Assembly (NCBI RefSeq): GCF_964204645.1
Contig: NC_134033.1
Location: 15,880,655-15,944,654, forward strand
Source of the DNA: Tubulanus polymorphus
Taxonomy: Eukaryota; Animalia; Nemertea
DNA: 64,000 nucleotides
Reading direction: 5' to 3'
The notes below the pieces were generated by a model that did not search any database, was not told the DNA's origin, and saw nothing but the letters and a program-made list of their open reading frames with translations. Below are positions 19,370-56,700 of this stretch, piece by piece. A program made the translations under genes and the position numbers. Within the stretch, counting starts at the first letter, position 1, and each line of letters starts with the position of its first letter.

Positions 19370-19730
19370 ATAGAACTAAAATGAGCTTAAGACTGGTCTT
19401 AAGTTGTTTGATTGGTTATAGAACCTCCAGAATGAACTTAGACTGGTCTTAAGTTGCTAGATTGGTTATAGAACCAAAACGAGCTTAGACTGGTCTTAGG
19501 TTGTTAGATTGGCTATAGAACTAGAATGAACTTAAGACTGGTCTTAAGTTGTTAGATTGGTTATAGAACTAAAATGAGTTGAGACTGGTCTTAAGTTGTT
19601 AGATTGGCTATAGAACTAGAATGAACTTAGACTGGTCTTAAGTTGTTAGATTGGCTTTAGAACTAGAATGAACTTAGACTGGTCTTTAGTTGTTAGATTG
19701 GTTATAGAACCAAAATGAGCTTAGACCGGT
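19370..19730. repeat. 47-bp satellite array (~8 copies)
   Basis: Same unit as at 9.9-10.3 kb and 54.0-54.4 kb. Confidence 0.9.
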
Positions 19731-22683
19731 CCAGAGAAAGTTCATTTTGATTCTAAAGCCACGCAATCTATCAACTTACAACCGGTCGTCTTTAAGATCT
19801 AAACAAAGACCATATTTTTGGACAGGTACACTAACGACTATGTTTAGTTAGCTAACAAAACTTCGACGCAAAATTGAATTGCACCAATACTAACTAATGC
19901 CAAGGTGGTAATGATCAGAAACAGGTTCTGTGTCTATTTTTGGGGTGAGCCCTATAAGGCAGCGTGCATACTAACAAAAGGGGTACGGTAATTTAAAAGT
20001 AGAAATGATATTTAGTATGAAATGGTCGATGACCTTGAGTTTATAGAAGACTTATATAGGCCTATGCACTTGAATGACTTCGTGAACTCAAGTTATTTAC
20101 GGCATGTTTTTGTTTGGCCCATTTCTTTACCGGGTGCGTACATTTATAAATACGAATTCTCACTAACGAGGTTATATTCCATTGTGATACTTATTGTAGC
20201 ACGTAGGCAGCGGACCATCTTTACTAGTCCTATACCTCGTAAATTTAGTGTGGACTAGTTGCGTGGACAACTTGTCCCTGCTGTTCTCCTTACCTAGGCT
20301 ACTTCATTTTATGAAAAACTGATTTTACCTATTCAACATTGAATTAAGGATTTACTATTCCTGTTTGATATCAGAGTAAAAATATGAATATTCCCTTTGT
20401 GACGTCAGCCTACAGGCCAACAAATAGAACATATACAGGCCAGGATTCATAGGGGGTTTCAGGGGCCCCGTGACCCCCCCTGCTCAGCTACCAAAACATT
20501 TTTCTATCGTTTTCTTGAAGGAATGTACTCAAGATAAAGCAGGCGGACAGTAGCAGATAATCGGTACCATATCATCTTATGTTAACATTAACATTCTTTA
20601 TGAACCCCCCCTAGAAAAAATCCTAGATCCGCACCTGGGTAGACTAAAAAGATCCGAAATCATTTTATCGGGGTTTTAAGCATCGCATTAGGCTAGAAAG
20701 AGTTAAAAGGCGGCACTAGTATACTACAAAAAAAATTTGACTTTTAGACCGGACCTGCCAGCAAAGAAGAAAGGAAAGAAAGAAAACGAGTGGTTGGCTC
20801 TTTTGGAAGTTTACTATACAGGCAGGCGATGTGGCATCGTTTTAACTGAGGTGAATGATGTTAGTTCAAAACCTGTGAATTTACAACTCAGAACAGCGTA
20901 AAAATGACAAAAACAACTTACATCAGCAGCAGCAGCAGCAGCAGCAGCAAGCAACAGTAGCACTCATCAATCAGCTGATTATTACCGAGTCAAAATAAAT
21001 AAAAACAAACGCACGCAGCCGAAACGACGTCAAGCAATATACCGTTAGTTGAATTGTATTTACTATTCACATGCCATAGTCGACTATTCACTTGCCACGG
21101 TAACTTTATACACGCGGTAAATAGTTTTATTGAATTGCATTTATTCTTCGCATGCCGTAGATAACTCCTCACCTGCCATACTTGTTCAATTAAACTTTAT
21201 TGAGCAACGATAGCACGCGGCGATCTGGGCACCAACCGCGGTGCAGAATTTATCATATCCATATCATTTGTCAGTCTCCGTCTCATAGCTAGCAGACGGC
21301 AGCGGCAGGTCTTCCCATTGGCTATTTCTCATCGAACACGACTCGCAGCGGATGTAAGAGCAGGTGCTTTTTAAATCCATTATCTAAGTAATTTCCCCCG
21401 AGTGCCGGGAGGCTGATAGATCCAGCCGCACTTTTAGGGAGCAGTGTGACGTATACTGAGCGGAACGTGCGCAGGCCAGACCTTGATGACGGGAAATTAT
21501 AGGAAATCAACCCGGGATAGCGTCTCTTTAAAAAATTGCGAGAAATCTGTATCAGTGCCACGATATAAACTACATCAAGCTTCCATGCTACGTCGCAGTT
21601 ATAAGTGTTTTGCTAGAAGGTGTGAATAGCAGCCTAACTCAAGGTTTAACTTCTCAGTCTTCCCGCACGTATTCATGCTCATTTATGAACCCAATCCATC
21701 AACTAGCGTTAATACGATTAGTTTATTTTCATATACAGTCAAATCTTAGTTAACCCGGTCCTGGACAAGAAATCATGAAGCCACCAAGTCAATGTTAAAT
21801 CTGGTTATAGATTTATATTTAGAATTATTCCACAAAAAGCATTTAAACAAAATACGTCATTTATTACGATGGTTTACTTATATTCACAAAGGGCGGATTC
21901 AAGATTTTATTTTTGATTCGTAGATTTGAAAATTAAGCGATTGATTCAAGCCGCCTGACAATTCTTCCAATTTTTTTCAATTCTTCCACAATTTACAAAA
22001 CAATCCATACAAAAAAAATATAAAACATGATTTAATTTCAAGATCGTTTCAAAGATTTATGATATATTTTACATTTCCCGGTAACCGCGAGCACTAATGG
22101 CGAAAAGGCGCCGAGTCCGAGTTGTTAAGATAATTGGAAATGCCACGATATGTGAAATAGAGTCACGAATGTTTCATCTGAGCTAACATCAATTATTCGA
22201 CGTTTTGAATATATCCTAATATTCGACTTCAGGAACTTTTGAGGTTAATGCACCATCCAACAGTGTTAGTCTTGGGAAACCAAGATCTGGGACGTCGTAA
22301 AGCAAAACAAACCAAAAACAAAACTAGTATTCCCGAAGATGGCTTAGATATTAGACTAAAATGATAACTTTTTCATCTCTGCTGAGTTTAAAAGATGACC
22401 CGACCGGCCACTATCTACCCTTAAAAAAACAACATGATCAAGCTAATTACAGACCCGGCAGCTTTAGAAATGAGCTGATTATAAATGTCATTGCGGTTTA
22501 CACACGATGACCCAACCGCTGCGGAGAAACAAGGTTTCATTTCATCTTAGCCTTAGTATACAGTCGAAACCTGCAATAAACATAAGACCAAGGAAACATT
22601 TCAGGACTCTTTTCATTCTGAGTGTACAGGGATTTTCTATATCGTGATCTAAATCGATCGTGGTATTGTTTTTACTGTTTGAT

Positions 22684-25600
22684 TCAGCCAGCATATATTG
22701 TAGAAAGGTCTGCGGAAGTAGATACCACCTCAGCCGTCGCTGGTCGCGGCGGGGCTGGATTAGCGCTACCCCTTGCCGTGTGCGGGTTCGACGAACCGGA
22801 GCCCGTGGGTCCGACTGATACGAGCGGACCCGGGTAGCCGCTAGGCGGCGCCGTTTGTGGCTGTATGGAGCTGTCGGGTCGGTTGAATTTCACTTTCTGG
22901 TTCGCCGTTTCTACGTACAACACCGCGTATATCTTCGGCAAGAAGAGAAACACTAATGTGACCGTTCCGTTGAATATCAGAGCCAGAGATAAGAGTATTA
23001 TCTGATAATAAGCCTTAGTAGTGGTGAAATAAGTAGATATGAACGCCAGCCAGATTACTAGCGTCGTATACACGCAAAGAGCTATGAATCGCGACTCGTT
23101 GAAATTGTCGGGTACCTTTCGAGTTTTGAACGCGTAGAACGAACACATCGTGACCAGTATCAAGTTGTATAACAGAAACGCGCAGAGACCTTCAAACGGG
23201 ATCGCGCACGACATCTCGACGTAGTTTATTACCGATACGGGCATGCGCAGTATCACATCCGGTGGCGTAATGGCCGTACTGATTACGCTGATGATAATCT
23301 GAAAAAATGGAAAAAGGAAATTGTCAAAATTTTGCTTATGAAATCGACGATATCAAAATCAGATTCAAGAAATGCCTATTCACAATTCCTCCTATGACAT
23401 CATCAGAGACTGCAGTCTGCTATAGCATAATATTCATATTCGAAACTGACCATCAGTGAAGTCATATAATATGCTAATAGAGACATTTTTGTTCAAATGG
23501 TTTAAAATTGTCGCTTTTCAAGACATAATCTTATGTAAAGAGTTTTGACAATGTGTTTACGTCAAGCGCTTCTCGGGAACAAATAGAGCTTTAGTAGTAA
23601 TTTACGATTGGTCTTGCGGCAAATTATCTTGGTGTGATATCATGGAGGGGGTATTCATCGTGATGGGGGTATTCATTGGGCGACACGAAGATGCTAGAAG
23701 TGAAAAAAAGGAACGATCTTTGATTTGAAGTTTTGAGTATTACCTGAATAGTAATAATGAAACTGGCGATGAAAACCTGAAATTTCTGCCCGACTAAAGG
23801 TGGCGCTTTCATCGCCTTTTTACTGTACTCGAATATGATATAAATGCGGCTGGTTTTCGTCAGCAGCGGCGCGTAGACCCAGGTAAACCCGAGACTAAAC
23901 CCGAAATAAGCGGCTCTACACGATATAACTGTCGGTTTTACGACCAATAGAAATACAGTTACGTATCCGATGAAAACCCCGATCAACATCAAATGGCTGA
24001 GTTCCCGACTCGAAGCCATGATCAGTTTCTCTTTGCGTTTCAGTATGTACACGATCGTGGTTACCAGGGTCAGAATGATTCCTACAACCGCCGACATTGC
24101 CAACGTGTAGAAAGCTGCATCGTCGGTTTCCATGAAATATGGCTCGATCGGTTGGCATTCTAGGAAACTGGTTTGATTGGGCCAATGCAATTTCGCGCAC
24201 GGTTCGCATGTACTTTCGTTGACTACGATTTCGTTAACGGCGCATGCGCGACACTCCCAACAACAGGACAGTTCGCGGGGCAGGTAGAAATGGCCCGGTT
24301 CGCACGGCTTCGAACAAACAGATTCCGGAATAAGGACGTCGTTTTCATCACCGCCAGGGGGAGTTATTGGTCGGAATGGCTTCCATTTGACCTCGGAACC
24401 GTTCCAGTACATGGTATTCTCACGCGCGTACCACAGCGCTACTTTCTGTTTATGATATAGTGCACCGGCGCGTAGTGATTCGCCGCGGACGAACTGTTCG
24501 ATCGCGTATGTACCCATTAAATCGGATTCTTCGTTGAATAATATGTCACCGGTCAAACCACGAAATGTCGTATTCTTTAGATATTCCAACAAACTAGGAC
24601 CGTCGATACACGCTACTAACGCCGCCCTATCGGTGGTATTCGCGCAGCGGTCCCGGATTAACGAATCTAACGCGCGGGCGAATGTTTCCACCGAGTCGAT
24701 AACAGGTGCTATTGACGTCATCGGTCGCACGTGACCCGGCAGTAGTGGTCCCGTCTCGTTACACGGGGGTCGCTCTCCGCCGCCCACTATCCACGAGCAC
24801 CCGAACTGCATCTCCCAGAATTCTCGGAACCACGGGTTCGACATCCTGTTCGTCGGATTTAACGTCAGAAAATAACGATTGAAATCCGGTACGTTTACGG
24901 ATATGGGTAAGACGTGTAAAGCGCCGTGGATGGCTTCTTCTAGGCCGGACATCTGATTTACCCGAGCTGACCACGCGTCGCTGCCAATCCATATAAAATG
25001 CCCCGTAACGTTTTTCCTCAACACGGCCGCGAACAGACCTTTGGCGTTCGTCGGTCCAGCGAACACGATCACAGCTCGCGCCGCTTTCACCTCCAGTAAC
25101 CTATCGACGATCGTATCGTATTGTTTAACGGTCGTATCTTCGTAAACCCGCGCCGAATAAGCGATACAGCTGCCCCTTAAGTCGGTCAGGTCTGATAGAG
25201 ATTTAAACGCATTTTCGCCGTACGTTCCGGCCGTGTAGACCACCGATACGTAGGTCCAATTAAACCGCGTTAATATATCCATCATGGCGCGTACCTGGAA
25301 TTTATCGGGAGGAACTAATCGAAGAAAATACGGATATTCATCTTTACGGCTCAGTTCGTCCGCCGTGCTCGAATAGCTAATTTGAGGCACGTGAAATTGG
25401 CCGAGAAGTTTCGCTACCAGGGAACTGCTGCTACTCTTCATAGCGCCTACGACTCCTTTGACCGGGAAGTAATGTCGCGTTCCGTCCGACTGACCGGTAG
25501 TAGTTGCATTAGCGCCATCTCGCGGTACGAAATGTAACGCCTGACCCATAGCGGTCATATCTTTGATACAACTATCCAAAATGATGAATCCCAGCGTTAC

Positions 25601-25861
25601 GTTGGGCAGAATATCAGTTCTGTTATTCATTAGCTCTACGGCGTAAACCATCGCTTCAATGTACTGCATGATAGCTGTGTTTCTCAACGCATCCCCGCAC
25701 GGTTTACTAGAACTGTAGCCTTGGATCGGGAATATTCCGCCCAAGTTTATATCGCCCAGTCTAGCGTACTGTTTATCCGGTAGTCCCGGCACCCGTATCG
25801 ACCAGACCACACCGAGCATCGCCATAGATACGAACGCAACAATCGACCGTAGTGACGTCAT
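22684..25861 (-). CDS. Class C GPCR, metabotropic glutamate receptor-like (VFT + cysteine-rich + 7TM), ~910 aa; exons 25861-23744 and 23298-22684
   Basis: Signal peptide; GDINLGGIFP; ILPNVTLG...DSC; PQISYSST; NPWFREFW; PESVCSKPC; CCWEC; KTRKVPDNFNESRFI. One phase-0 GT-AG intron. Confidence 0.93.
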
Positions 25862-28800
25862 AGCGGGCAAAATTAAACGTACAACAGACTTGACGGTAGA
25901 CTAAATGTCGTTCTTCTCCAAAGAATTCCGCAATTTATTTTCTAACGGTTTTGGTATTCTGCCTTGTTGCCACTTTGTGATAATGGAGTTTAGAACGTAA
26001 AGTTTTCCTCAATTTGGGATTTTTGATTATCTATATCGCGTCCTTGACCTTTATATGAAACTAAAACTCGATCCGACATCAGCTCCAGCGAACGAACGTC
26101 GACAGTTTTCCATTAAGTTGCTTCCAGATAGAAACTTATTTAAAAGTGCCTGCAGATCGCATTACGACCGATATGATGTAAATTGTAATGATTCAATTAT
26201 TTTTGAACGCCTGGTTTTAATGCACCGTCCTTCGCGTGTGTTCGTTTTCCGTCGCCGTTCGCTTGGCGTCGAGTTCTTTTTTTTTGACGAAATGTATTCC
26301 CTTCTCGCGGAGGTTTCGTGTGATCGCGACGAATCTTAATTAAAATCTGAAACGATGTGGAAAGATAACATTTCAGAAAGGATTGGCTGACAAAAAGGGA
26401 TATCCGTAAATACATTTTTATATAGACCTGATTATCCCGAGGGTGAGACCTGTCTAATCGGAAATTACCATTCCGTTTTCGACGCGAGATGTATAATTAC
26501 GGATATTTTTGCGTGGTATTAAAATTGACATATTGTCATTATTCATTTCATAACGTATTCGTTTGCTGTAACAAATTTCAGGTTGCTAGGAACACACACG
26601 AGTGGAGCTAATTGAGTTGTTTTTGGTGATATTTTTGATACAATTACCATCGGGCATTTATCGTTTCACTTGAAAATGGCTGTCAGAAAACTTTTCAAAT
26701 AATCCTTATTTTCAGTTAATCCGTATGGATTTTACCAGGTCCCGCAATCTCTTTTGTGAAAATGGATTCTGTTATCAATTTAAATCTACACTCACCTTTG
26801 TTTGTGACAAGCAGTTTCGCAAGCAATTTTGCTATCTTCCTCCAAAAACTTTTTTTCGGATTTTATCTCTGTTTTTTAATAGTACCTTTTTCTATCTTGC
26901 CCGTAAAACTTTCGAATCTCGCGGCTGCGCAAGCCGATCAGCTACTGTCGAATCGAGCACTCCACGTATCCAGACCGGGTACATCCGAGTAATCAACCTC
27001 CCTCCCTCCCTCGTCAAAACAAATCTTAACATCCATCATCTGGTTACCATGGAGACCAGAAATGAGAACTGCGGTTATGGTTTTTATCTGTATATAATTG
27101 GAGAAGTTAAAAATCCCGTTTATATATCATCGCACGATTGCGCTTTTAAGAAGGTTTGCAAAACCCGGCGCAGCACCCGACCCCCGCTGTGAGCGCGTTA
27201 GCGCGTCATTTACAGGCAGCCGCTAATGACCCGGTAATCGGCGAATGAAACTACTCAGAAATAACACCTATCCTTACGAGATGACATCTCCATTTATTCG
27301 GTTATAAGTCGAGAACGCAACCGCGGCGTCGTCTCCTTTCACGGTCACGGCCGTGAGGCAACTGTATATACAGATTCAAAAGTTTAAAACCAAGAATTCA
27401 TTCAACCAAAAGTTGAAATCACACGACATTTCGAACTGTCCCGTCACCGATGATGATTCCTCTAGTGAGATGTCAAAATGCCGTATGCCATTCAAATTTT
27501 TGGTTGAATGAATTCTATATTTCAACCACACTTATTTCGATAATGGTTGTTAGTTGGAAAACACATTCGCTGTTTCGGATCTTTCAGCTTTTTCCCCATT
27601 TCTGGTTTGATGACACTCTAGTGTGTGCTAATTAAACCAGTAAAAACACGTCTGTTTTAAATCGATACTTGCGTTTTGCTGTTGAGAGGTCGTTCAGATA
27701 TTCGAGTTGAGAGGAGTTCGAAAGTACTTTTATTACAAAAAATAGTTCGAGCTGAACGCGATTATTCGAGTGAATTTAAAAAAGCATGGTTTAAAACATT
27801 AGGAGACGGATAACAGATTTCAACATATGCCGAGTTGAGAAGATTTTTGACTTGATCGGATCCGAGTTGAGAGGAGTCTTCTGTATTCATTATGTACATG
27901 TACATGTATGTTAAATGTGTGTTTGTATATCTGTATGCATGTGTAATGGGTGTATGTCAGCATGTATATCAAATAAATCAAATAATTTATAACAACTTTG
28001 ACGTGGATATTCCTGCTGAGGTTCTTCAGGGAAAATGGGAGGTAGGGGGTTTTTGGTTAGTGGATTCCCGCGAGTAATTCACAACACAAACAGAAACGAC
28101 AGCAACGACACAAGCACCAGCAGCAGCAGCAGCTGCTCAGCACCAGCGGATCAAAAAGCGTGGAAGTTAAGATCAACAAACGATGATTTTCCTTTTATTC
28201 AAGCATCACATTCAGTTTCTTACAAAGCAGTTCGATAAACGATGAGAGAAGACAGGCGCACCGGGTTTTGTTACCTGAAACAAATAGAACAGAAATCAGA
28301 AATGTATTCAGATCCACCTTTTTGTCTCAATTCAATTCAATACTTAATTTCACGGATAAGCGGAACAATAAGAACAGAGGAGATTTAAAGAAAAGAAAAA
28401 AAAACAAATTTACAAATATTGTCTCGCTAGGTGGCGCTATGTGAAGTCAGTCTCGCGCCACGAATGTAATCACGCGGGAAAGCAGTCCGCTTGGTGTTAT
28501 TAGAATGTGGCCGATTCTGAATTTTTGTTTGACTTTATTATGTGTTTTCGTAGTTGACTGACTTACGAACGAGCATGATAGACTTGAAGTTACACCATCT
28601 AGCGGAATAGTGCAGTTCATCGATTGCCCTATATCTATGAATGTCTACTCTACGAAAATTCTACGTGACTTCAAACTTCCTGACGTTTTCGTAATGGATA
28701 GTTGATTATGGGGAAAAACGATCACCGGAATTTAGTAAGCGATTAGCGTCACCGAATACACCATCAATTACTTAGTTTTTTGTAAACTTTCTAATTTTGA

Positions 28801-28891
28801 TTGTAAGATTTCGTACGTCAGTAAACTGTACTTTAGACGCTATAAATGACAAATAATCTTGATGTGACAAATGAATTGATTAACTTACATT

Positions 28892-31800
28892 TTAATGAAA
28901 GTCTTCGTGAACTTCGTGTTTATCTTCGTGCGTATCTGTATGTAAATCTTCGTATATTTCATTCAATCCGTCGCCGTGTACGACTTCACCGACATCTTCG
29001 TGTACCTCGTGCGCATCCTCGTGAACTTCGGGAATGTTCGGTTTGACCGGGTGCACCTCTTCGTGAACCTCCTGATGATCCTCGTGCGAGTCTGAATGCA
29101 CGTCGTTGTGTATCTCATCGAGTCCGTCGCCGTGCACAATTTCGTGCTTGTCCTCGAATACCTCGTCTACATCCTGATGTACCTCTGGATGCTCCTTCGA
29201 GGGTTCTATCACGACCTCGACTCCTTCCCCAGTGTGCGGTGGTTCTTCTATCACAACAACGACTCCTTCCTCCGTGTGCGGTGGTTCTTCTATCACAACC
29301 ACGACTCCTTCCTCAGTGTGCGGTGGTTCTTCTATCACAACCACAACTCCTTCCTCCGTGTGCGTTGGTTCATCAACAATGATGTAATCTTCAGTAATGA
29401 CGTCACTGCGCCCGATTGCCGGCATATATTCGTCGATGATATGATCATCTCCTTCATCCATCAAAACGGGACCGTGTTTACAACCTTTATGTCCAACAGG
29501 ACCATATCCTCCTCCAGCACCTCCAACCCCATAAACTGCTCCTCCTGTTATATAACTTTTTCCATATGCACCTTCAGAACCTGCATACGCTCCACCTCCG
29601 GCACCTCCTCCATACGCACCTGCTTCTCCGGCACCTCCTCCGTATGCACCACCTCCTCCAGCGCCTAATCCGTACGCACCACCTCCAGCACTTCCTCCAT
29701 ACCCACTTGCAGCACCTGAGCCGTAATTATCTGCTGGACCTCTTCCAGTTCCATATCCACTTATTCTATCTCCTTTGTAACTACTACCCCCGCCAGAACC
29801 TGCACCATAATCTCCAACACCTCCATACGCACCACCTCCTCCAGCATTACCTCCATAGGTAGCACCTCCTGTAGCACCTCCTCCATATGCACCTCCTCCA
29901 GCATTACCTCCATACGCACCACCTCCTCCAACATTTCCTCCATAGGCAGCACCTCCTCCTGCACCTTCTCCATAGGCACCACGTCCAGAATTTCCTCCAT
30001 ACAAAACACCTCCTCCAGCATTTCCATACGCACCATCTCCTCCAGCACCTCCTTTATAGGCACCGCCTCCTCCATAAGCAGCACCTCCTCCAGCACCTCC
30101 TCCATAGGCACCACCTCCTCCAACATTTCCTCCATAGGCACCACCTCCTCCATAAGCACCTCCTCCAGCACCTCCTCCATAGGCACCACCTCCAGAATTA
30201 CCTCCATACGTACCAGCTCCTCCAGCATTACCTTCATACACTCCTCCTCCTCCAGCACCTCCTTTATAGGCACCACCTCCTCCATACAAACCACCTCCAG
30301 CACCTCCTCCGTAAGCACCACCTCCTCTTGCGCCATATCCACCTCCCGAATTACCTCCGTGGCCACCTCCAAATCCGCCTCCATGACCACCTCCAACTCC
30401 GCCTCCGTGGCCACCTCCAACTCCGCCTCCGTGGCCACCTCCAAATCCGCCTCCATGACCACCTCCAACTCCACCTCCATGGCCTCCTCCAAATCCGCCT
30501 CCAACTCCGCCTCCGTGGCCACCTCCATGACCACCTCCAACTCCACCTCCGTGGCCACCTCCAAATCCGCCTCCATGACCACCTCCAACTCCACCTCCAT
30601 GGCCTCCTCCAAATCCGCCTCCAACTCCGCCTCCGTGGCCTCCTCCATGACCACCTCCAAATCCGCCTCCATGGCCACCTCCAAATCCGCCTCCATGGCC
30701 ACCTCCAACTCCGCCTCCATGACCACCTCTTACTCCGCCTCCATGCCCACCTCCAACTCCGCCTCCATGACCACCTCCAACTCCACCTCCGTGGCCACCT
30801 CCAAATCCGCCTCCATGCCCACCTCCGTGGCCTCCTCCAAATCCGCTTCCATGGCCACCTCCAAATCCGCCTCCATGGCCACCTCCAAATCCGCCTCCAT
30901 GGCCACCTCCAACTCCGCCTCCATGCCCACCTCCAAATCCGCCTACATGGCCACCTCCAAATCCGCCTCCATGGCCACCTCCAACTCCGCCTCCATGCCC
31001 ACCTCCAAATCCGCCTCCATGGCCACCTCCAACTCCGCCTCCATGACCACCTCCGTAGCCTCCTCCAAATCCGCCTCCATGGCCACCTCCAAATCCGCCT
31101 CCATGACCACCTCCGTGGCCTCCTCCAAATCCGCTTCCATGGCCACCTCCAAATCCGCCTCCATGGCCACCTCCAACTCCGCCTCCGTGGCCACCTCCAA
31201 ATCCGCCTCCATGCCCACCTCCAAATCCGCCTCCATGACCACCTCCAACTCCACCTCCGTGGCCACCTCCAAATCCGCCTCCATGCCCACCTCCAAATCC
31301 GCCTCCATGACCACCTCCAAATCCGCCTCCATGCCCACCTCCGTGGCCTCCTCCAAATCCGCCTCCATGCCCACCTCCAGATCCACCTCCATGACCACCT
31401 CCAACTCCACCTCCATGGCCACCTCCAAATCCGCCTCCATGACCACCTCCAAATCCGCCTCCATGCCCACCTCCGTGGCCTCCTCCAAATCCGCCTCCAT
31501 GCCCACCTCCAGATCCACCTCCATGACCACCTCCAACTCCACCTCCATGGCCACCTCCAAATCCGCCTCCATGACCACCTCCAAATCCGCCTCCATGCCC
31601 ACCTCCGTGGCCTCCTCCAAATCCGCCTCCATGGCCACCTCCGTGGCCTCCTCCAAATCCGCCTCCATGCCCACCTCCAGATCCACCTCCATGGCCACCT
31701 CCAAATCCGCCTCCATGGCCACCTCCAAATCCGCCTCCATGGCCACCTACATGGTCACCTCCAAATTCGCCTCCATGACCACCTCCGACATCGTCCAATC

Positions 31801-33358
31801 CTCCGATATGATCTGGTCCTCCCATGTGATCTGGTCCTCCCATGTGGTCGAGTCCTCCCATGTGATCTGGTCCTCCCATGTGATCTGGTCCTCCCATATG
31901 ATCTGGTCCTCCCATGTGATCTGGTCCTCCCATGTGGTCGAGTCCTCCCATATGATCTGGTCCTCCCATGTGGTCTGGTCCTCCCATATGAGCTGTTCCT
32001 CCCATATGATCTGGTCCTCCCATGTGGTCGAATCCTCCCATATGATCTGGTCCTCCCATATGATCTGGTCCACCCATGTGGTCGAGTCCTCCCATATGAT
32101 CTGGTCCTCCCATGTGGTCGAGTCCTCCCATATGATCTGGTCCTCCCATGTGGTCGAGTCCTCTCATATGATCTGGTCCTCCCATGTGGTCGAGTCCTCC
32201 CATATGATCTGGTCCTCCCATATGATCTGGTCCTCCCATATGATCTGGTCCTCCTATATGACCTGGTCCTCCCATGTGGTCGAGTCCTCCCATATGATCT
32301 GGTCCTCCCATATGGTCTGGTCCTCTCATATGATCTGGTCCTCCCATATGATCTGGTCCTCCCATATGATCTGGTCCTCCCATGTGGTCGAGTCCTCTCA
32401 TATGATCTGGTCCTCCCATATGATCTGGTCCTCCCATGTGGTCGAGTCCTCTCATATGATCTGGTCCTCCCATATGATCTGGTCCTCCCATATGATCTGG
32501 TCCTCCCATGTGGTCTGGTCCTCCCATATGAGCTGGTCCTCCCATATGATCTGGTCCTCCCATGTGGTCGAATCCTCCCATATGATCTGGTCCTCCCATA
32601 TGATCTGGTCCACCCATGTGGTCGAGTCCTCCCATATGATCTGGTCCTCCCATATGATCTGGTCCTCCCATGTGGTCGAGTCCTCTCATATGATCTGGTC
32701 CTCCCATGTGGTCGAGTCCTCCCATATGATCTGGTCCTCCCATATGATCTGGTCCTCCTATATGACCTGGTCCTCCAATGGGGTCTAGTCCCCCGATATG
32801 CGGTCCACCGTGACCGTGAAGTCCTCCATGATCAAGTGGCCCACCAGGGCCGTGTGGTCCAGCAGGTCCGTGAGGTCCCTCAGGGCCATCAAAACCTCCT
32901 AGAGGTCCTCCTGGACCGTGTGGTCCTTCAGGACCGCGTGGTCTTCGAGGGCCTTTACGATCCCGTCGACCGAGAGGTCCTCCTGGACCGTGTGGTCTGC
33001 GAGGGCCTTTTGGTCCCCTGGGACCGAGAGATGCTCCAGGGCCGCGTGGTCTACCAAAAGGTCCTAAATAGAAAACAATATTTCAAGTCATTTTAGTGAA
33101 ATACATGTTGAATGATGTTCATTGAATACTCTTTGACAGTAATGTAATATGTTTATTTCTACAGCACGTTCCATAGGAAGGTGGCTGCATCCATTCTTGA
33201 TTCCCCCTATGACGTTGTCATTATAATCGTCATAAGGGGTTTAACGGATGGTGCCGTCTTTTTTGGATAGCTCTACCTACACGTATACTAACACCTATAT
33301 ACATACCCCCTGAACAAGCTACGAATCCTACAAACACCAGTAACACGAATATCTTCAT
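28892..33358 (-). CDS. Secreted Gly/His/Met/Tyr-rich repetitive structural protein A, ~1407 aa; coding exons 33358-33307 and 33063-28892
   Basis: Signal exon [17 protein letters not shown] with G|GTATGT donor; acceptor TTTAG at 33065-33064 joins in frame to the 1283-aa ORF. Non-coding exon 1 donor at 33616 and TATTTATA upstream. 3'UTR intron 28888-28275 and AATAAA at 28199-28194. Confidence 0.85.
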
Positions 33359-33688
33359 GATCTGATGAAATATTGAACATTGAATTTAGTTTTTTTTTTC
33401 ATGCGATATTGAGAGAACAATTCTGATAATTTGTAATTCCAGCCTCCATAAAACCCCAAATACATCAGTAATTACCGAACTGCATGAGACATCTGATAAA
33501 ATGAACTATTCACAGATGCTTTAGCTAAATGCAATGAACGCAGTACGGTTATTCGATGATGTCATTGGAGGATTTATGGAGGACGTCATCATTTTAGAGA
33601 GTTGATGAAACTTACCGGAGTTCTGTGAATGGTGCGCACTATTCGACGTAACTCCAATGAATTAAGGAAATTTTCTGTCAAACTGAAC

Positions 33689-38628: not shown

Positions 38629-40962
38629 CTAGTACCCACCTCCTCCAGCATTTCCTCCGTATGCACCACCTCCTCCAGCATTTCCTCCGTATGCACCACC
38701 TCCTCCAGCATTTCCTCCATACGCACCACCTCCTCCAGTATTTCCTCCATACGCACCACCTCCTCCAGTATTTCCTCCATACGCACCACCTCCTCCAGCA
38801 TTTCCTCCGTATGCACCACCTCCTCCAGCATTTCCTCCATACGCACCACCTCCTCCAGTATTTCCTCCATACGCACCACCTCCTCCAGTATTTCCTCCAT
38901 ACGCACCACCTCCTCCAGTATTTCCTCCATACGCACCACCTCCTCCAGCATTTCCTCCGTATGCACCACCTCCTCCAGCATTTCCTCCATACGCACCACC
39001 TCCTCCAGTATTTCCTCCATACGCACCACCTCCTCCAGCATTTCCTCCGTATGCACCACCTCCTCCAGCATTTCCTCCGTATGCACCACCACCTCCAGCA
39101 TTTCCTCCGTACATACCACCTCCAGCACCTCCTCCATACATACCACCTCCAGCACCTCCTCCATACGCACCACCTCCTCCAGCATTTCCTCCGTACATAC
39201 CACCTCCTCCAGCATTTCCTCCGTACATACCACCTCCAGCACCTCCTCCATACATACCACCTCCTCCAGCACCTCCTCCATACGCACCGCCTCCTCCAGC
39301 ACCTCCTCCATACGCACCGCCTCCTCCAGCACCTCCTCCATACGCACCACCTCCTCCAGCACCTCCTCCATACGCACCTCCTCCAGCATTTCCTCCGTAC
39401 ATACCACCTCCAGCACCTCCTCCATACGCACCACCTCCTCCAGTATTTCCTCCATACGCACCACCTCCTCCAGCATTTCCTCCGTATGCACCACCTCCTC
39501 CAGCATTTCCTCCGTATGCACCACCACCTCCAGCATTTCCTCCGTACATACCACCTCCAGCACCTCCTCCATACATACCACCTCCAGCACCTCCTCCATA
39601 CGCACCACCTCCTCCAGCATTTCCTCCGTACATACCACCTCCTCCAGCATTTCCTCCGTACATACCACCTCCAGCACCTCCTCCATACATACCACCTCCT
39701 CCAGCACCTCCTCCATACGCACCACCTCCTCCAGCACCTCCTCCATACGCACCTCCTCCAGCACCTCCTCCATATGCACCACCTCCTCCATCACCTCCTC
39801 CATACGCATCACCTCCTCCAGCACCTCCTCCATACGCACCTCCTCCAGCACCTCCTCCATAACCACTTTCAGCATCTGGTCCATATTTATCTCCTGGACC
39901 TCTTCCAGTTCCATATCCACTTATTCTATCTCCATTATAACTGCTTCCCCCGCCAGAACCTGCACCATATCCATTACCTCCTCCAGCACCTCCATAGGCA
40001 CCACCTCCTCCAGCACCTCCATAGGCACCACCTCCTCCAGCACCTCCATAGGCACCACCTCCTCCAGCATTCCTTCCATATGCACCACCTCCTGCAGCCC
40101 CTCCTCCATACCCACCACCTCCTGTTACTCCATATCCACCCCCTGCATTTCCTCCATAGCCACCTCCAAATCTTCCTCCTCCATGGCCTCCTCCAAATCC
40201 ACCTGCATAATTACCTCTTTGACCGAATCCACCTCCGAAACCACGTCCAAATCCAGCCCCAATGCCTTTTCCAAATCTGCCTCCAGGGCCTCCTCCAAGT
40301 CCACCTGCATAACTACCTCTTTGACCTCCGAATCTTCCATACCCACCACCTCCTCTTACTCCGTATCCACCCCCTGCATTTCCTCCATAGCCACCTCCAA
40401 ATCTTCCTCCTCCATGGGCTCCTCCAAATCCACCTGCATAATTACCTCTTTGACCGAATCCACCTCCAAAACCACGTCCAAATCCAGCCCCAAGGCCTTT
40501 TCCTAATCCAGCCCCATAACCGCCTTTAAATCCGCCTCCCATGTGACCTGGCCCTCCTATATAACCTGGTCCTCCCATATGACCTGGTCCTCCCATGTGG
40601 CCTGGTCCTCCCATGTGGCCTGGTCCTCCCATATGGCCTGGTCCTCCGAGCGGTCCACCAATAGGTCCTATAAGGAAAACAACATTATAATTGAATTATT
40701 TCAGTGAAGTACATGTTGATGTTCAACTCTGTGATAGTAATATATTAATAACGTTATCTTTACAGCGTGTTCCTTAGGAAGAACGTTACATCCGTTCAAC
40801 GCTCTATGATGCTATCATTTCGATCGTCATAAGGGGTTTAACGGATGGTGCCGTCTTTTCTGGATGGCTCTACGTACACGTATACTAACACCTATACATA
40901 CCACGAAGGAAACCTGAGCCAGCTACGAATCCTACGAATGCCAGCAACACGAGTGTCTTCAT
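38629..40962 (-). CDS. Secreted Gly/Tyr-rich repetitive structural protein B, ~699 aa, paralog of A; coding exons 40962-40902 and 40667-38629
   Basis: Signal exon MKTLVLLAFVGFVAGSGFLR, G|GTATGT donor, acceptor TATAG at 40669-40668, in frame with the 667-aa ORF. Same exon layout as A (non-coding exon 1 donor at 41173). Confidence 0.85.
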
Positions 40963-43067: not shown

Positions 43068-43463
43068 TTATTGCCATTGTGCTTTTTGTTCTGCGGCATC
43101 TCTGACCCGGTTCAAATGAGACAGAGTTTTCGCATCCTCCATCTTTCTTTTGTCGACGCCTCTTTCGTCGCGCTGAAAAGAACTATCGCTGCTGCCTCTA
43201 ATCTGTTGCGACGACCGTTTTAAGCGAAGCGACCTTTTACGACGACTAACGCTCCTATCGAAATCCTCATCGTGTATTTCTATATCCGCGAATTCAGGCT
43301 TGTCCGGCACCGCTGGTAACGGGTCGGCGTATCTGCGGTCAAGCGCTACTTCTTCCAGCACATCACCGCCAACTTCGTCTCTAGCTCTGAGTTCGAATCG
43401 GTCATATCCCATAACTAATCCTGACATCGGTACCAACAACAAGCAAAAAATCACGCCTTTCAT
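43068..43463 (-). CDS. Secreted prepropeptide, 131 aa, with multiple basic cleavage sites
   Basis: Signal peptide MKGVIFCLLLVPMSGLVMG, acidic pro-region, RR/RRKR/KR/KRK sites. Acceptor at 43474-43473 just upstream of AAAATG; upstream donor at 43620; AATAAA at ~42875 and ~42863. Confidence 0.7.
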   Translation of the reverse strand: MKGVIFCLLLVPMSGLVMGYDRFELRARDEVGGDVLEEVALDRRYADPLPAVPDKPEFADIEIHDEDFDRSVSRRKRSLRLKRSSQQIRGSSDSSFQRDERGVDKRKMEDAKTLSHLNRVRDAAEQKAQWQ

Positions 43464-53776: not shown

Positions 53777-56700
53777 TCACCAATTCTGTAGTCCCGGTTT
53801 GTTTAAAGTCATGAAATAAATCTGGCAAGACGAGCCCGAGCGTATAGACGAGAAAAACACCTGAAAATAACGCGGAAAATACAGACGTTTAACTACGAGC
53901 ACGAACACAGAATTTCAAAACTAACGATTACTTTAGAAGCGAGTTTGATTTCAGTTACTTGGAAGCACTGTTTAAGAGCGCAGATGCATTGAATCTAAAT
54001 TACATCTTGAATTAAATCTAAAACTAGACTTAGATCTTAAGACTACCAGTAGTCATAAGTTGTCAGATTGGTTATAGAGCCAAAATGAGCTTAGACTGGT
54101 CTCAAGTTGTTAGATCAGCTATAGAACTAAGATTGTTTAGACTGGTCTTAAGTTGTTAGATTGGTTATAGAACCAAAATGAGCTGAGACTGGTCTTAGTT
54201 AGATTGGTTATAGAACTAAAATGAGCTTAGACTGGTCTTAAGTTGTTAGATTGGTTATAGAACTAAAATGAGTTTAGATTGGTCTTAAGTTGTTAGATCA
54301 GCTATAGAACTAAGATTGTTTAGACTGGTCTTAAGTTGTTAGATTGGTTATAGAACTAAAATGAGCTGAGACCGGTCTCAAGTCGCTATAGATGTAAGAC
54401 TGATATCAAATCTAAGTCGCGACTGTACAACCGCAGCTCGCCAGGGGTTCCTAATTTCAAAACGTACCTTATCATTGCGTTCGCAGAGAAACTTCAATTT
54501 CTGCGCTTTTTTATGCATGAAAACGCCGTCGAGGTGACCGGTCTCCGCAGCTCGGATCTCGATCGCCTTGTTTCCCCAACCCATGATCTGGCCGGTGCCG
54601 ATGAACGCGACCGACGTCGGCATTTCCCCCCACTGGAGCACGACGTTTTTCGTAATTTTGCCCATCGTGTCGACGTAAACTCCTTCATCTACAACGACAG
54701 ACGTTAAACGACAATCAATCAAACACGACGACGAAACACGACAGGTTTTTCAAAATTTAAATTCAATTGTTTGGTCGTAACTTACTGTCGTAACAGAGTA
54801 GAAGATGCATTCCGTTACTGCTCGGTAAAATAACAATCGTATGAGGACAAATTGTTTGATTCGTCTGAAAATAAATAAACAAATATACTCATTATATATA
54901 CTCATTATATATACTCATTATATAGGTACTCATTTAGGTACTCGGTGAGTAGAAGCAGCGGGAACCAGTTCCACAGCTGAGAGTTATGATTTGACTCGGA
55001 ATTAACTCGTTAAAATTAACTAATTCTAAGTCAGAGTTTATTTCTAACACATAACTGTGGAACTGGATCCAGTTCATTGTATCTCCGGTTCTCGTAAAGA
55101 GACGATTCGAATGAATCGAATCAGGTTCAGTTCCACAGTTGTGAGTTAAGGGTTAACTTTGAGTCAAAACTGAACTCACAATTGTGCGTTATTGGTTAGG
55201 CCTACTCATTGAGTAGTCGAGCCGCAGTCTAATGTATCTCGTTCCAGAGCTTGAATGCAGACAAAGTGAATGAAATGTTTCCTAGTTCACAGTTAGAAAT
55301 CTGACCGTAGAACAATGGAACCATCAAGTCCAGTTCCACAGTTGTGTGAGTTAAAATTAACTCCGAGTCAAATCTGAACTCAGTAAAACTGTAAAACTGG
55401 ATCCTGGTCCCGTATCACAGTCGTGAAGTCAAATTACTTAGAACTGAACTAATCGACAATTCGAACCTAGAATTGCGCAACTAATCTAAAGTCTACACGA
55501 CGAATCTATAGAATGAAATTCAGATTTAAAATGCGCCGATTTATCTACAGAACGAGAGAGAGAGACCGATGTTGAATAATTCTGGCGATTCGAAATTAAA
55601 GAAACGCAAGTTATTTTTAGTAGAAAGAAGCAAAATTTTCGCATAACTTCAAGAAAGTATATAATAATACGATTTCTTATTAATTTACGTAAAAATTCAA
55701 CACAAATTTTTACCGGCGGGATAAAATAGGACCATGCTATGAGAATCTGGGCTTTGGGAAAATTCGACTTCAATTTCGACGATCGGCGAGTCGTTTTTCA
55801 GCCGGTTAGTTATCGCTTAGTTTCGGGGTGAACCGGAATTCAGCAGCGGGGTTCGAGTAAACCGTGATGAGTAGAAACGAAGGGTGACGATGACGATGAT
55901 GATAATAAGAATGATGATAGAAGTGGTGGCGATGAGGCAGGCTAAATAGGAAACGTTTAACCTATACCTGATCACGGTACTGACGTAGGTAAAATAGAGA
56001 GGAAAGAGAGAAATATCACCATCAAAACTTCACTAACATTCAACAGTATTTTTACGAACAACCTTTTAAAAACTAATCTTTTGAAATTCTGCTTTTCATT
56101 AAATGAGACGCCTGCATTGTTACTGCGGCAAGCGAGGAATGCGTGAGGATCCACCTGGTGTCAATAGTGGGTGCTCAGTTAGCGCGCTTCAGTTTCTTCT
56201 ACAGGGTGGCGCCACTTTCCGGCCATTTACAAATCCCCTCAGTTTTCCCCGATTTTGCCACAAAACTCCCTCTGGGTGGATATGAGAAATTTCTAGGTTT
56301 AAGATGTTTAAATTCATTCATTTTTCATAGAATCACGAACTGATAAAGAAACACGTGGTCAATAGCTTTATCAATCTTCAAATAATTCAGTCCCCCCAGA
56401 CCCTGAGCAAGATCAAGCCCCGGATCCTGAGTAAGATAATAATTGTATAACTTACATGAGAAGGAATGTAAAGGTCGAACACTGTGTTTGTATCTAAATC
56501 AATCGCGTGGAAACCATTCTGAGATCCATAGACGACCTTCAAACGCTGACCTTCTTCAACCGTCAGATCGCACTGTAGAGGCTTGTGATGCAGATCTGTG
56601 AATGACTGTTTACGAGAAATACAGACAAAACATTAATCAGTCGATGACCAGTAGATTTAAACTACTCAGTATATTATTACTTTTGTAGGTGCTTCTTTGA

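Follow-up and report, generated by a model that had tools for sequence, protein, structure and literature searches.

The 64,000-nucleotide stretch of the Tubulanus polymorphus genome considered here (the window; assembly GCF_964204645.1, contig NC_134033.1, positions 15,880,655–15,944,654 of the forward strand) carries two neighbouring minus-strand genes, A and B, the first of which encodes a putative secreted protein containing a long tandem array of the hexapeptide GGPDHM. T. polymorphus is a palaeonemertean ribbon worm. Gene A (ATG 33358–33356, stop TAA 28894–28892) has two exons: a short exon for a signal peptide, judged by eye from the exon 1 translation, is joined through a phase-1 intron, whose junction rebuilds a Gly codon, to one large exon (Table 1). 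The predicted product has about 1,400 residues, the exon 2 part being about 125 kDa and falling into five blocks: a basic Gly/Pro/Arg block, the hexapeptide array, a GGGH-GGG(F/V) block, a GGAY/GGNAGGG block and an acidic His/Glu/Val tail. Exon 2 encodes 47% Gly, 10.9% His (151 His), 6% Asp, 5.5% Pro and 3.8% Met, with one Cys, and four of the five blocks contain His. The basic block looks collagen-like, but a collagen identity was rejected: its G-X-Y register breaks repeatedly, it has no Pfam collagen match and its HMMER collagen matches are compositional. The gene A stop is directly followed by AAT/GTAAGT (28885–28894, minus strand), a consensus splice donor, and an alternative 3′ exon is possible.

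The array is read in the frame of a long open reading frame (ORF; 28892–32743, minus strand), which extends upstream to a stop at 33083–33085. In this frame, it consists of 55 consecutive in-register 18-bp units (32776–31787, minus strand) without insertions or deletions, in good agreement with the roughly 54 hexapeptides that a first-pass annotation of the DNA had placed at 31783–32779. GGPDHM accounts for 34 units, followed by GGLDHM (8), RGLDHM (4), GGPGHI (2), GGFDHM (2) and five singletons, one of them GGLDDV. By position, the residues are G50/R5; G55; P39/L13/F2/T1; D51/G2/A2; H54/D1; and M51/I3/V1. The His-Met pair, previously described as almost invariant, does hold nearly throughout (His in 54 of 55 units, Met in 51), but the second Gly (55/55) and Asp (51/55) are just as invariant; similarly, P/L/F and G/R exchanges do make up most of the variation, as had been noted, but Thr at position 3 and replacements of Asp (by Gly or Ala) and Met (by Ile or Val) are also seen. 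Tandem Repeats Finder reported periods of 36, 54 and 90, all multiples of 18, over 31799–32800 with scores near 1400. Allowing up to three mismatches, the consensus 18-mer gave 46 matches in the window, 6 of them in paralog B, where shuffled sequence predicts 0.10. The double unit (36-mer) was confined to the gene A locus in the genome searched (77 contigs totalling 268 Mb, of which the one holding the window measures 16.5 Mb). Public sequencing contigs that hold the locus are short and none spans the array, so they give no independent confirmation of its copy number. The array is predicted to be intrinsically disordered: AlphaFold modelled 20 units without secondary structure (predicted local distance difference test (pLDDT) 54, predicted template modelling score 0.11), and gave the acidic tail a pLDDT of 47.

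The uniformity of the units mostly reflects recent amplification, because 26 of the 55 are identical in DNA, with only 13 distinct DNA versions in all, and because the array contains an internal block duplication. Written as unit types, it reads abbcbdbbcebfbgh-bbbdbbdbbbibc-abbbcbdbcbcebfbjh-bckbkkcklm, in which units 1–15 recur as units 29–45 with two inserted units and one substitution; since they do, the array has been growing recently through unequal exchange. We count about nine non-synonymous events within it (events, as distinct from units): about three fall on position 3, two each on Asp and Met (for Met, ATA and ATC) and one or two on the first Gly, whereas His and the second Gly have none. 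Judged by the refuting condition set in the first-pass annotation, namely His/Met codons that vary like the rest, Met shows about as much freedom as the remaining positions whereas His shows none, a comparison of little power, as with about nine events we estimate a chance probability of about 0.2 for zero events at any one position. The two main unit types, GGA GGA CCA GAT CAT ATG and GGA GGA CTC GAC CAC ATG, differ only synonymously in their Asp and His codons (CAT/CAC 34/20 and GAT/GAC 33/18 across the array), and the most polymorphic nucleotide columns are 12 and 15, where the Asp and His codons end (split 37/17 and 34/20 among the 54 regular units). This synonymous-only variation supports the frame in which the array is read here, as well as the retention of its Asp and His.

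The genome holds two copies of the module of signal exon plus intron, 76% identical to each other, one belonging to gene A and the other, 7.6 kb away, to paralog B. Over 74 aligned codons of the A–B linker, the non-synonymous rate (dN) is 0.17 and the synonymous rate (dS) 0.38, giving a dN/dS of about 0.43. Paralog B was said to have about five GGPGHM-type units lacking Asp; we count six, five GGPGHM and one GGPGYI, and none has Asp. That the Asp-containing array arose or expanded in the A lineage, as was also proposed, is plausible: GGPGHI opens each half of the array and contains the GGT codon seen in paralog B, from which GAT is a single transition away. Polarizing this change would take an outgroup, and the His/Met block of a third gene, C, carries Asp too.

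Gene C shares with gene A a 52-nt signal exon, a phase-1 intron, a single large exon, a block rich in Gly, Pro, His, Met and Asp, one Cys, a poly-Gly/Tyr block, a basic Pro-rich block and an acidic (I/V)V(I/V)VIEEP tail. Its first block (Gly 40%, Pro 20%, Met 19%, His 14%, Asp 6%) is built from GGHGGPMMHGDM (five copies) and HGPGGPGPMDHGPGPMM (four copies), and is followed by poly-Gly/Tyr, a basic Gly/Pro/Arg/Met block, the single Cys and an acidic tail with EEGIVIVIEEP. This block differs from the array of gene A in that its units are 12 and 17 residues long, contain Met-Met-His and Met-Asp-His and hold less Asp (6%); the order of the blocks is also different. The A and C tails align in a pairwise BLASTP comparison (E = 2e-4), with only the tail motif matching, and kinship of the two genes is only moderately supported. 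Genes A, B and C each have a signal exon ending in phase 1 (52, 61 and 52 nt) and one large low-complexity exon, and they appear to be a small, lineage-restricted family of secreted block-copolymer proteins. The repeat units of A and C cannot be aligned, yet both genes keep the same Gly/Pro/His/Met/Asp alphabet, which suggests that the His/Met/Asp chemistry matters and not just the repeat; we regard this shared alphabet as the best available evidence on that point. Together with the synonymous-only variation, it would provide support for His, Met and Asp that is independent of the invariance of the array.

A genome search for further genes with a His/Met block returned two weak extra matches, both satellites. 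Other secreted Gly/Met/Tyr/His genes exist in the genome, as do secreted Gly/Met/Tyr proteins without His. At G000:C9:568584-572384 (on the contig that carries gene C), another pair of low-complexity genes for secreted proteins was noted, their signal peptides (MMKFAVIFLGLIATCMA and MTKFAVIFLGLIASCMA) being related; one has abductin-like GGGMAGGY repeats, and the other has GHGVGHGAGMGY repeats followed by silk-like GAGYGVGTGAG repeats.

Table 1 Features of genes A, B and C. Coordinates are window positions except for gene C, which lies outside the window. UTR, untranslated region; pI, isoelectric point.
Feature	Coordinates	Strand	Description
Gene A 5′ UTR and upstream region	33359..33600	minus	Stretches conserved between genes A and B
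Gene A exon 1	33307..33358	minus	52 nt; 17-residue signal peptide and first base of next codon; donor G/GTATGT at 33306; homologous to signal exons of paralog B and gene C
Gene A intron	33064..33306	minus	Phase 1, 243 nt, GTATGT...TTTAG; aligns with paralog B intron
Gene A exon 2	28892..33063	minus	One open frame, ~1,390 codons, 4.17 kb
Basic Gly/Pro/Arg block	32777..33063	minus	94 aa, pI 11.8
Hexapeptide array	31787..32776	minus	Second block of gene A product; 330 aa, G32 H16 D16 M15 P12 %
Higher-order block, first copy (units 1–15)	32507..32776	minus	Unit string abbcbdbbcebfbgh
Higher-order block, second copy (units 29–45)	31967..32272	minus	Unit string abbbcbdbcbcebfbjh
GGGH-GGG(F/V) block	30359..31786	minus	476 aa, Gly 74%, His 13%; HGGGF x22, HGGGV x16, HGGGH x8
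GGAY/GGNAGGG block	29561..30358	minus	266 aa, Gly 53, Ala 17, Tyr 11 %; silk- or shematrin-like; includes linker conserved with paralog B
Acidic His/Glu/Val tail	28895..29560	minus	222 aa, pI 4.4, sole Cys of exon 2 product, HE(D/E)xH runs
Four 14-aa repeats inside acidic tail	29204–29371	minus	
Candidate poly(A) signal AATAAA	28534..28539	minus	First after stop; ~355 nt 3′ UTR; sequence pattern only
Paralog B exon 1	40902..40962	minus	61 nt, signal peptide MKTLVLLAFVGFVAGSGFLR
Paralog B exon 2	38629..40667	minus	677 codons; six GGPGHM-type units, Gly/Phe/Arg block, GGNAGGGG(A/M)Y repeats; no acidic tail
Paralog B hexapeptide units	40540..40647	minus	Five GGPGHM and one GGPGYI, no Asp
Gene C	G000:C9:10705951-10707099 (L027:2949-4154)	minus	~400 aa, 5.2 Mb from gene A on same chromosome
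Gene C exon 1	L027:4395-4344	minus	52 nt, signal peptide MKLLALLAVVIGIAHSS; phase-1 intron, then one large exon

Searches beyond the genome, all of them run with exon 2 sequence, returned no relative of gene A. A word-indexed protein search with its N-terminal 440 residues found only RRM proteins with GGGPDRM tracts, and an exhaustive HMMER search with the N-terminal 424 residues, run against 1.84 billion representatives of clusters that comprise about 15 billion proteins, returned collagens and assorted low-complexity proteins, with no (GGPDHM)n and no match to gene A itself. The 222-residue tail had no match in a protein search, Pfam assigned no family (E ≤ 0.1) to genes A, B or C, and literature searches for the repeat motifs gave no true match; a feature-based query of the ESM Atlas reached a best score of 0.85 on generic low complexity and was not used. 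The best database match, an RBM12-like RRM protein (P0001, from ENA; E = 8.5e-57), has about 40 GGGPDRM/GGSDRM repeats, nearly identical to GGPD(R/H)M, but such proteins are intracellular and RNA-binding, with RRM domains and no signal peptide. We rejected them as kin, as gene A has no RRM or other Pfam domain and the RBM12-like orthologue of T. polymorphus itself (G000:C3:8401531-8404608) lacks the GGGPDRM tract, and the resemblance is one of convergent low complexity. An annelid RBM12-like homologue contains scattered GGPDHM. One protein from an ENA metagenome scaffold (P0097, on the 837-bp scaffold L014; 194 residues) has a hydrophobic, signal-like N-terminus followed by GG(L/F)DH(A/T) hexapeptides and was the sole database protein seen to share the GGxDH core; the scaffold gives no context and we leave it as a curiosity.

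Next to gene A, an ORF at 23624–25870 (minus strand, 748 codons) is 100% identical to the NCBI entry ‘metabotropic glutamate receptor 4-like [Tubulanus polymorphus]’. Gene A is apparently unannotated, because neither search returned its own product although this neighbouring receptor is in the library. Contigs from public runs match the unique flanks of gene A without differences, and one of them crosses the intron and so is DNA; no splice was seen in any of them. In two of the runs (X2 and X3), contig ends at 28719, 29077–29080, 32296 and 33358 carry the same foreign 11–12-mer, GGTTCGTCCATC or its complement, which adjoins GATC sites in at least two cases and looks like a restriction-library adaptor, again suggesting that the runs are not RNA. 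An X2 contig joins a version of the gene A 5′ UTR (33358–33393) to 255 nt, the first 30 letters of which match the region upstream of paralog B; this junction could be an allele, an A/B hybrid formed by gene conversion or an assembly-graph artefact at a poly-A run.

We propose that the array is a disordered cross-linking module of a secreted extracellular material, pH-switchable and probably metal-binding, a reading that we favour with some reserve. That gene A encodes a secreted material protein at all is likely, with secretion resting on the signal peptide seen by eye. The product would be a disordered, five-block building unit of a tube, mucus thread or adhesive, in which the (GGPDHM)55 block would serve as a flexible, metal-chelating and pH-switchable cross-linker; each unit, bracketed by Pro, would isolate one His-Met pair and so present a His imidazole, the adjacent Asp carboxylate and a Met thioether. 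With textbook pKa values, the calculated charge of the array goes from +9 at pH 5 to −46 at pH 8.1, that of the HGGG(F/V) block from +60 to about 0, and that of the whole exon 2 product from +65 to −92. On passage from an acidic granule to seawater, the charge would thus reverse and the His residues would deprotonate, leaving 151 His free to coordinate Zn or Cu. Charge reversal with His deprotonation for Zn/Cu is the curing logic described for mussel byssus and worm jaws (PMC9999432; PMC6477608, PMC9465683).

His, Met and Asp form a chemically sensible ligand set for extracellular Cu and Zn, and the suggestion that His/Met tracts bind Cu(I)/Ag(I) was reasonable chemistry: Met and His are the ligands of the extracytoplasmic Cu(I)/Ag(I) binders SilE, PcoE, CusF and Ctr1 (PMC5008109). 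Metal-binding potential is therefore plausible, and somewhat strengthened by gene C. Whether the array actually has a metal-binding role we regard as finely balanced, leaning slightly to the negative, and copper specifically as its metal we consider rather unlikely. A more novel form of the proposal, a nemertean metal-cured material cross-linked through Met thioether, His and Asp, with a 55-site polymer that would be neutral in the gland and polyanionic in seawater, is improbable; it would bring into a structural biomaterial a Cu(I)/Cu(II)-competent ligand set that is known to date from copper trafficking proteins and is not known from such materials.

Several observations weigh against the proposed material function. 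The array is young, so invariance within it proves little and is weak evidence for selection. The A–C tail similarity is weak and escaped the genome search at E ≤ 0.001, a threshold at which the gene A tail is unique in the genome. Gene A is absent from both protein libraries despite the presence of a neighbouring gene of the same species, and the protein searches found no orthologue outside this genome, leaving none in which conservation could be assessed. The locus turned up in three public runs, all from a single study and none recorded as RNA. Finally, we know of no metal-bearing structure in palaeonemerteans.

The composition of the array would also suit a purely mechanical spacer, that is, a disordered or beta-turn-rich entropic spring like abductin, cnidoin or flagelliform silk, in which His, Met and Asp tune hydration, charge or covalent curing without chelation. 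Its Gly (32%) and Pro (12%) content, its Pro-Asp turns and the lack of predicted secondary structure all agree with this, as do the secreted Gly/Met/Tyr proteins without His elsewhere in the genome. Regular Met is also a feature of elastomers and of insoluble matrices that lack a demonstrated role for metals, such as abductin (GGFGGMGGGX repeats; PMC9999432), cnidoin (17% Met; PMC4321713) and the Met-rich insoluble proteins of shell and ligament, including those of Pinctada (PMC7591529), which tempers any metal reading of the array. A spacer leaves unexplained, however, why His and Asp stand beside Met in both A and C and why His is present in four of five blocks, and we think it unlikely.

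The first-pass annotation had offered a very high-capacity copper store as one function of the array. The nearest defensible form of that idea is a disordered polymer dissolved in epidermal mucus, a metal sponge or defence factor that would buffer or sequester Cu, Zn or Ag for detoxification or to starve microbes. The ligand set matches that of the disordered extracellular Cu(I)/Ag(I) sponges SilE and PcoE, there would be up to about 54 potential sites, and nemerteans secrete mucus copiously (PMC6410017). On the other hand, some 1,000 residues of a silk-like, structural type accompany the array in the same protein, and the array lacks the HxxM/MxxH helix spacing of SilE; we judge such a sponge improbable, and a store proper, which fits poorly with a signal peptide and with silk-like and other structural blocks, very improbable.

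Gene A might also not be a functional gene but a coding-looking satellite or a decaying duplicate, its frame open because the repeat lacks stops. The repeats leave a further two frames of the opposite strand open as well, neither protein library contains the gene and there was no RNA among the runs found. Against this, splicing at a canonical phase-1 intron would carry the signal exon in frame into 4.17 kb that encode five different blocks, one of them a non-repetitive tail, the architecture is common to three genes, the Asp and His codons show only synonymous changes and the linker dN/dS is below 1; we judge a non-functional gene quite improbable. The copper-dependent, catechol-oxidizing catalytic scaffold also suggested earlier has in its favour only the analogy with the Glycera multi-tasking protein (MTP), a Gly/His-rich protein of a copper- and melanin-containing jaw material (PMC9999432), and Tyr-rich blocks that could be substrates, but the array has 16% His against 40% in MTP, no GGH-type motif, no fold in the AlphaFold model and no homology in the HMMER and Pfam searches, and no melanized or Cu-bearing structure is known in T. 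polymorphus. This very improbable function is unsupported.

Three further features of the window lie outside genes A and B. In the metabotropic glutamate receptor gene (22684–25870, minus strand), the single 748-codon exon encodes the ligand-binding and Cys-rich parts and continues into the beginning of the transmembrane part. Two arrays of one 47-bp satellite, in the same orientation (19370–19731 and 54052–54383), bracket genes A and B, and a 131-residue ORF at 43068–43463 (minus strand), with a signal-like N-terminus and several dibasic sites (RRKR, KR), may encode a small secreted precursor.

Ribbon worms secrete tubes, mucus threads and pseudocnidae for which no structural proteins are known, and genes A, B and C are concrete candidates. 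Tubulanids carry pseudocnidae in the proboscis (PMC7897414), and the literature that we searched contained no paper describing their proteins. Of the matches inspected from the 1.84 billion cluster representatives, none had a comparable repeat chemistry, with His, Met and Asp each occurring once in every six residues. Should Cu or Zn be bound through Met, His and Asp, the array would represent a new coordination motif for metal-cured protein materials, and its hexapeptide would be a simple, synthesizable unit for bio-inspired polymers; should it bind no metal, gene A would still illustrate clearly how an orphan structural gene can be built up from young tandem arrays.

Among known systems, the bacterial proteins SilE and PcoE are disordered His/Met sponges with HxxM/MxxH motifs (PMC5008109), and like gene A they are extracytoplasmic and offer many His and Met ligands for Cu(I)/Ag(I). 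Their motifs, however, lie on metal-induced helices that take up some 6–9 ions in about 140 residues, whereas in gene A His and Met are adjacent in a helix-incompatible Pro/Gly context, in 55 units fused to structural blocks. The i,i+3/4 spacing is absent from the array, where the next His comes five residues past Met, across Gly-Gly-Pro, and no helix is predicted. There is no homology: genes A, B and C had no Pfam family, and neither SilE nor PcoE stood out in the two large protein searches.

The invertebrate elastomers abductin and cnidoin resemble gene A in being secreted and disordered, with short Gly-rich repeats and regular Met, but homology is again lacking in both. Abductin, at about 136 residues and about 1% Pro (PMC9999432), has no regular His or Asp, as opposed to the GGPDHM units, 12% Pro in the array and about 1,400 residues of gene A, and cnidoin is Gln/Cys-rich with minicollagen-type Cys domains.

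The jaw proteins Nvjp-1 of Nereis and MTP of Glycera are Gly/His-rich and associated with Zn/Cu (PMC9999432). With these and with the His-rich domains of mussel preCols, gene A shares a secreted, disordered, Gly/His-dominated product, a block-copolymer layout and, prospectively, curing by His deprotonation and Zn/Cu. Its His content is lower, at 16% in the array (11% overall) against 27–40 mol%, so that, with 32% Gly, the array falls short of Gly/His dominance of the Nvjp-1/MTP type, a class defined by function and not by homology; the lower bound of that His range is the 27% reported for Nvjp-1. Met and Asp as regular members of every unit have no equivalent in these proteins, no sequence relationship was detected with these proteins, and gene A comes from another phylum, Nemertea, and from a worm with no known hard or metal-bearing tissue. 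On this comparison, the functional resemblance of gene A would be to the structural proteins of annelids and molluscs that are rich in His and cured by pH and metals, with the bacterial sponges resembling it only in ligand chemistry.

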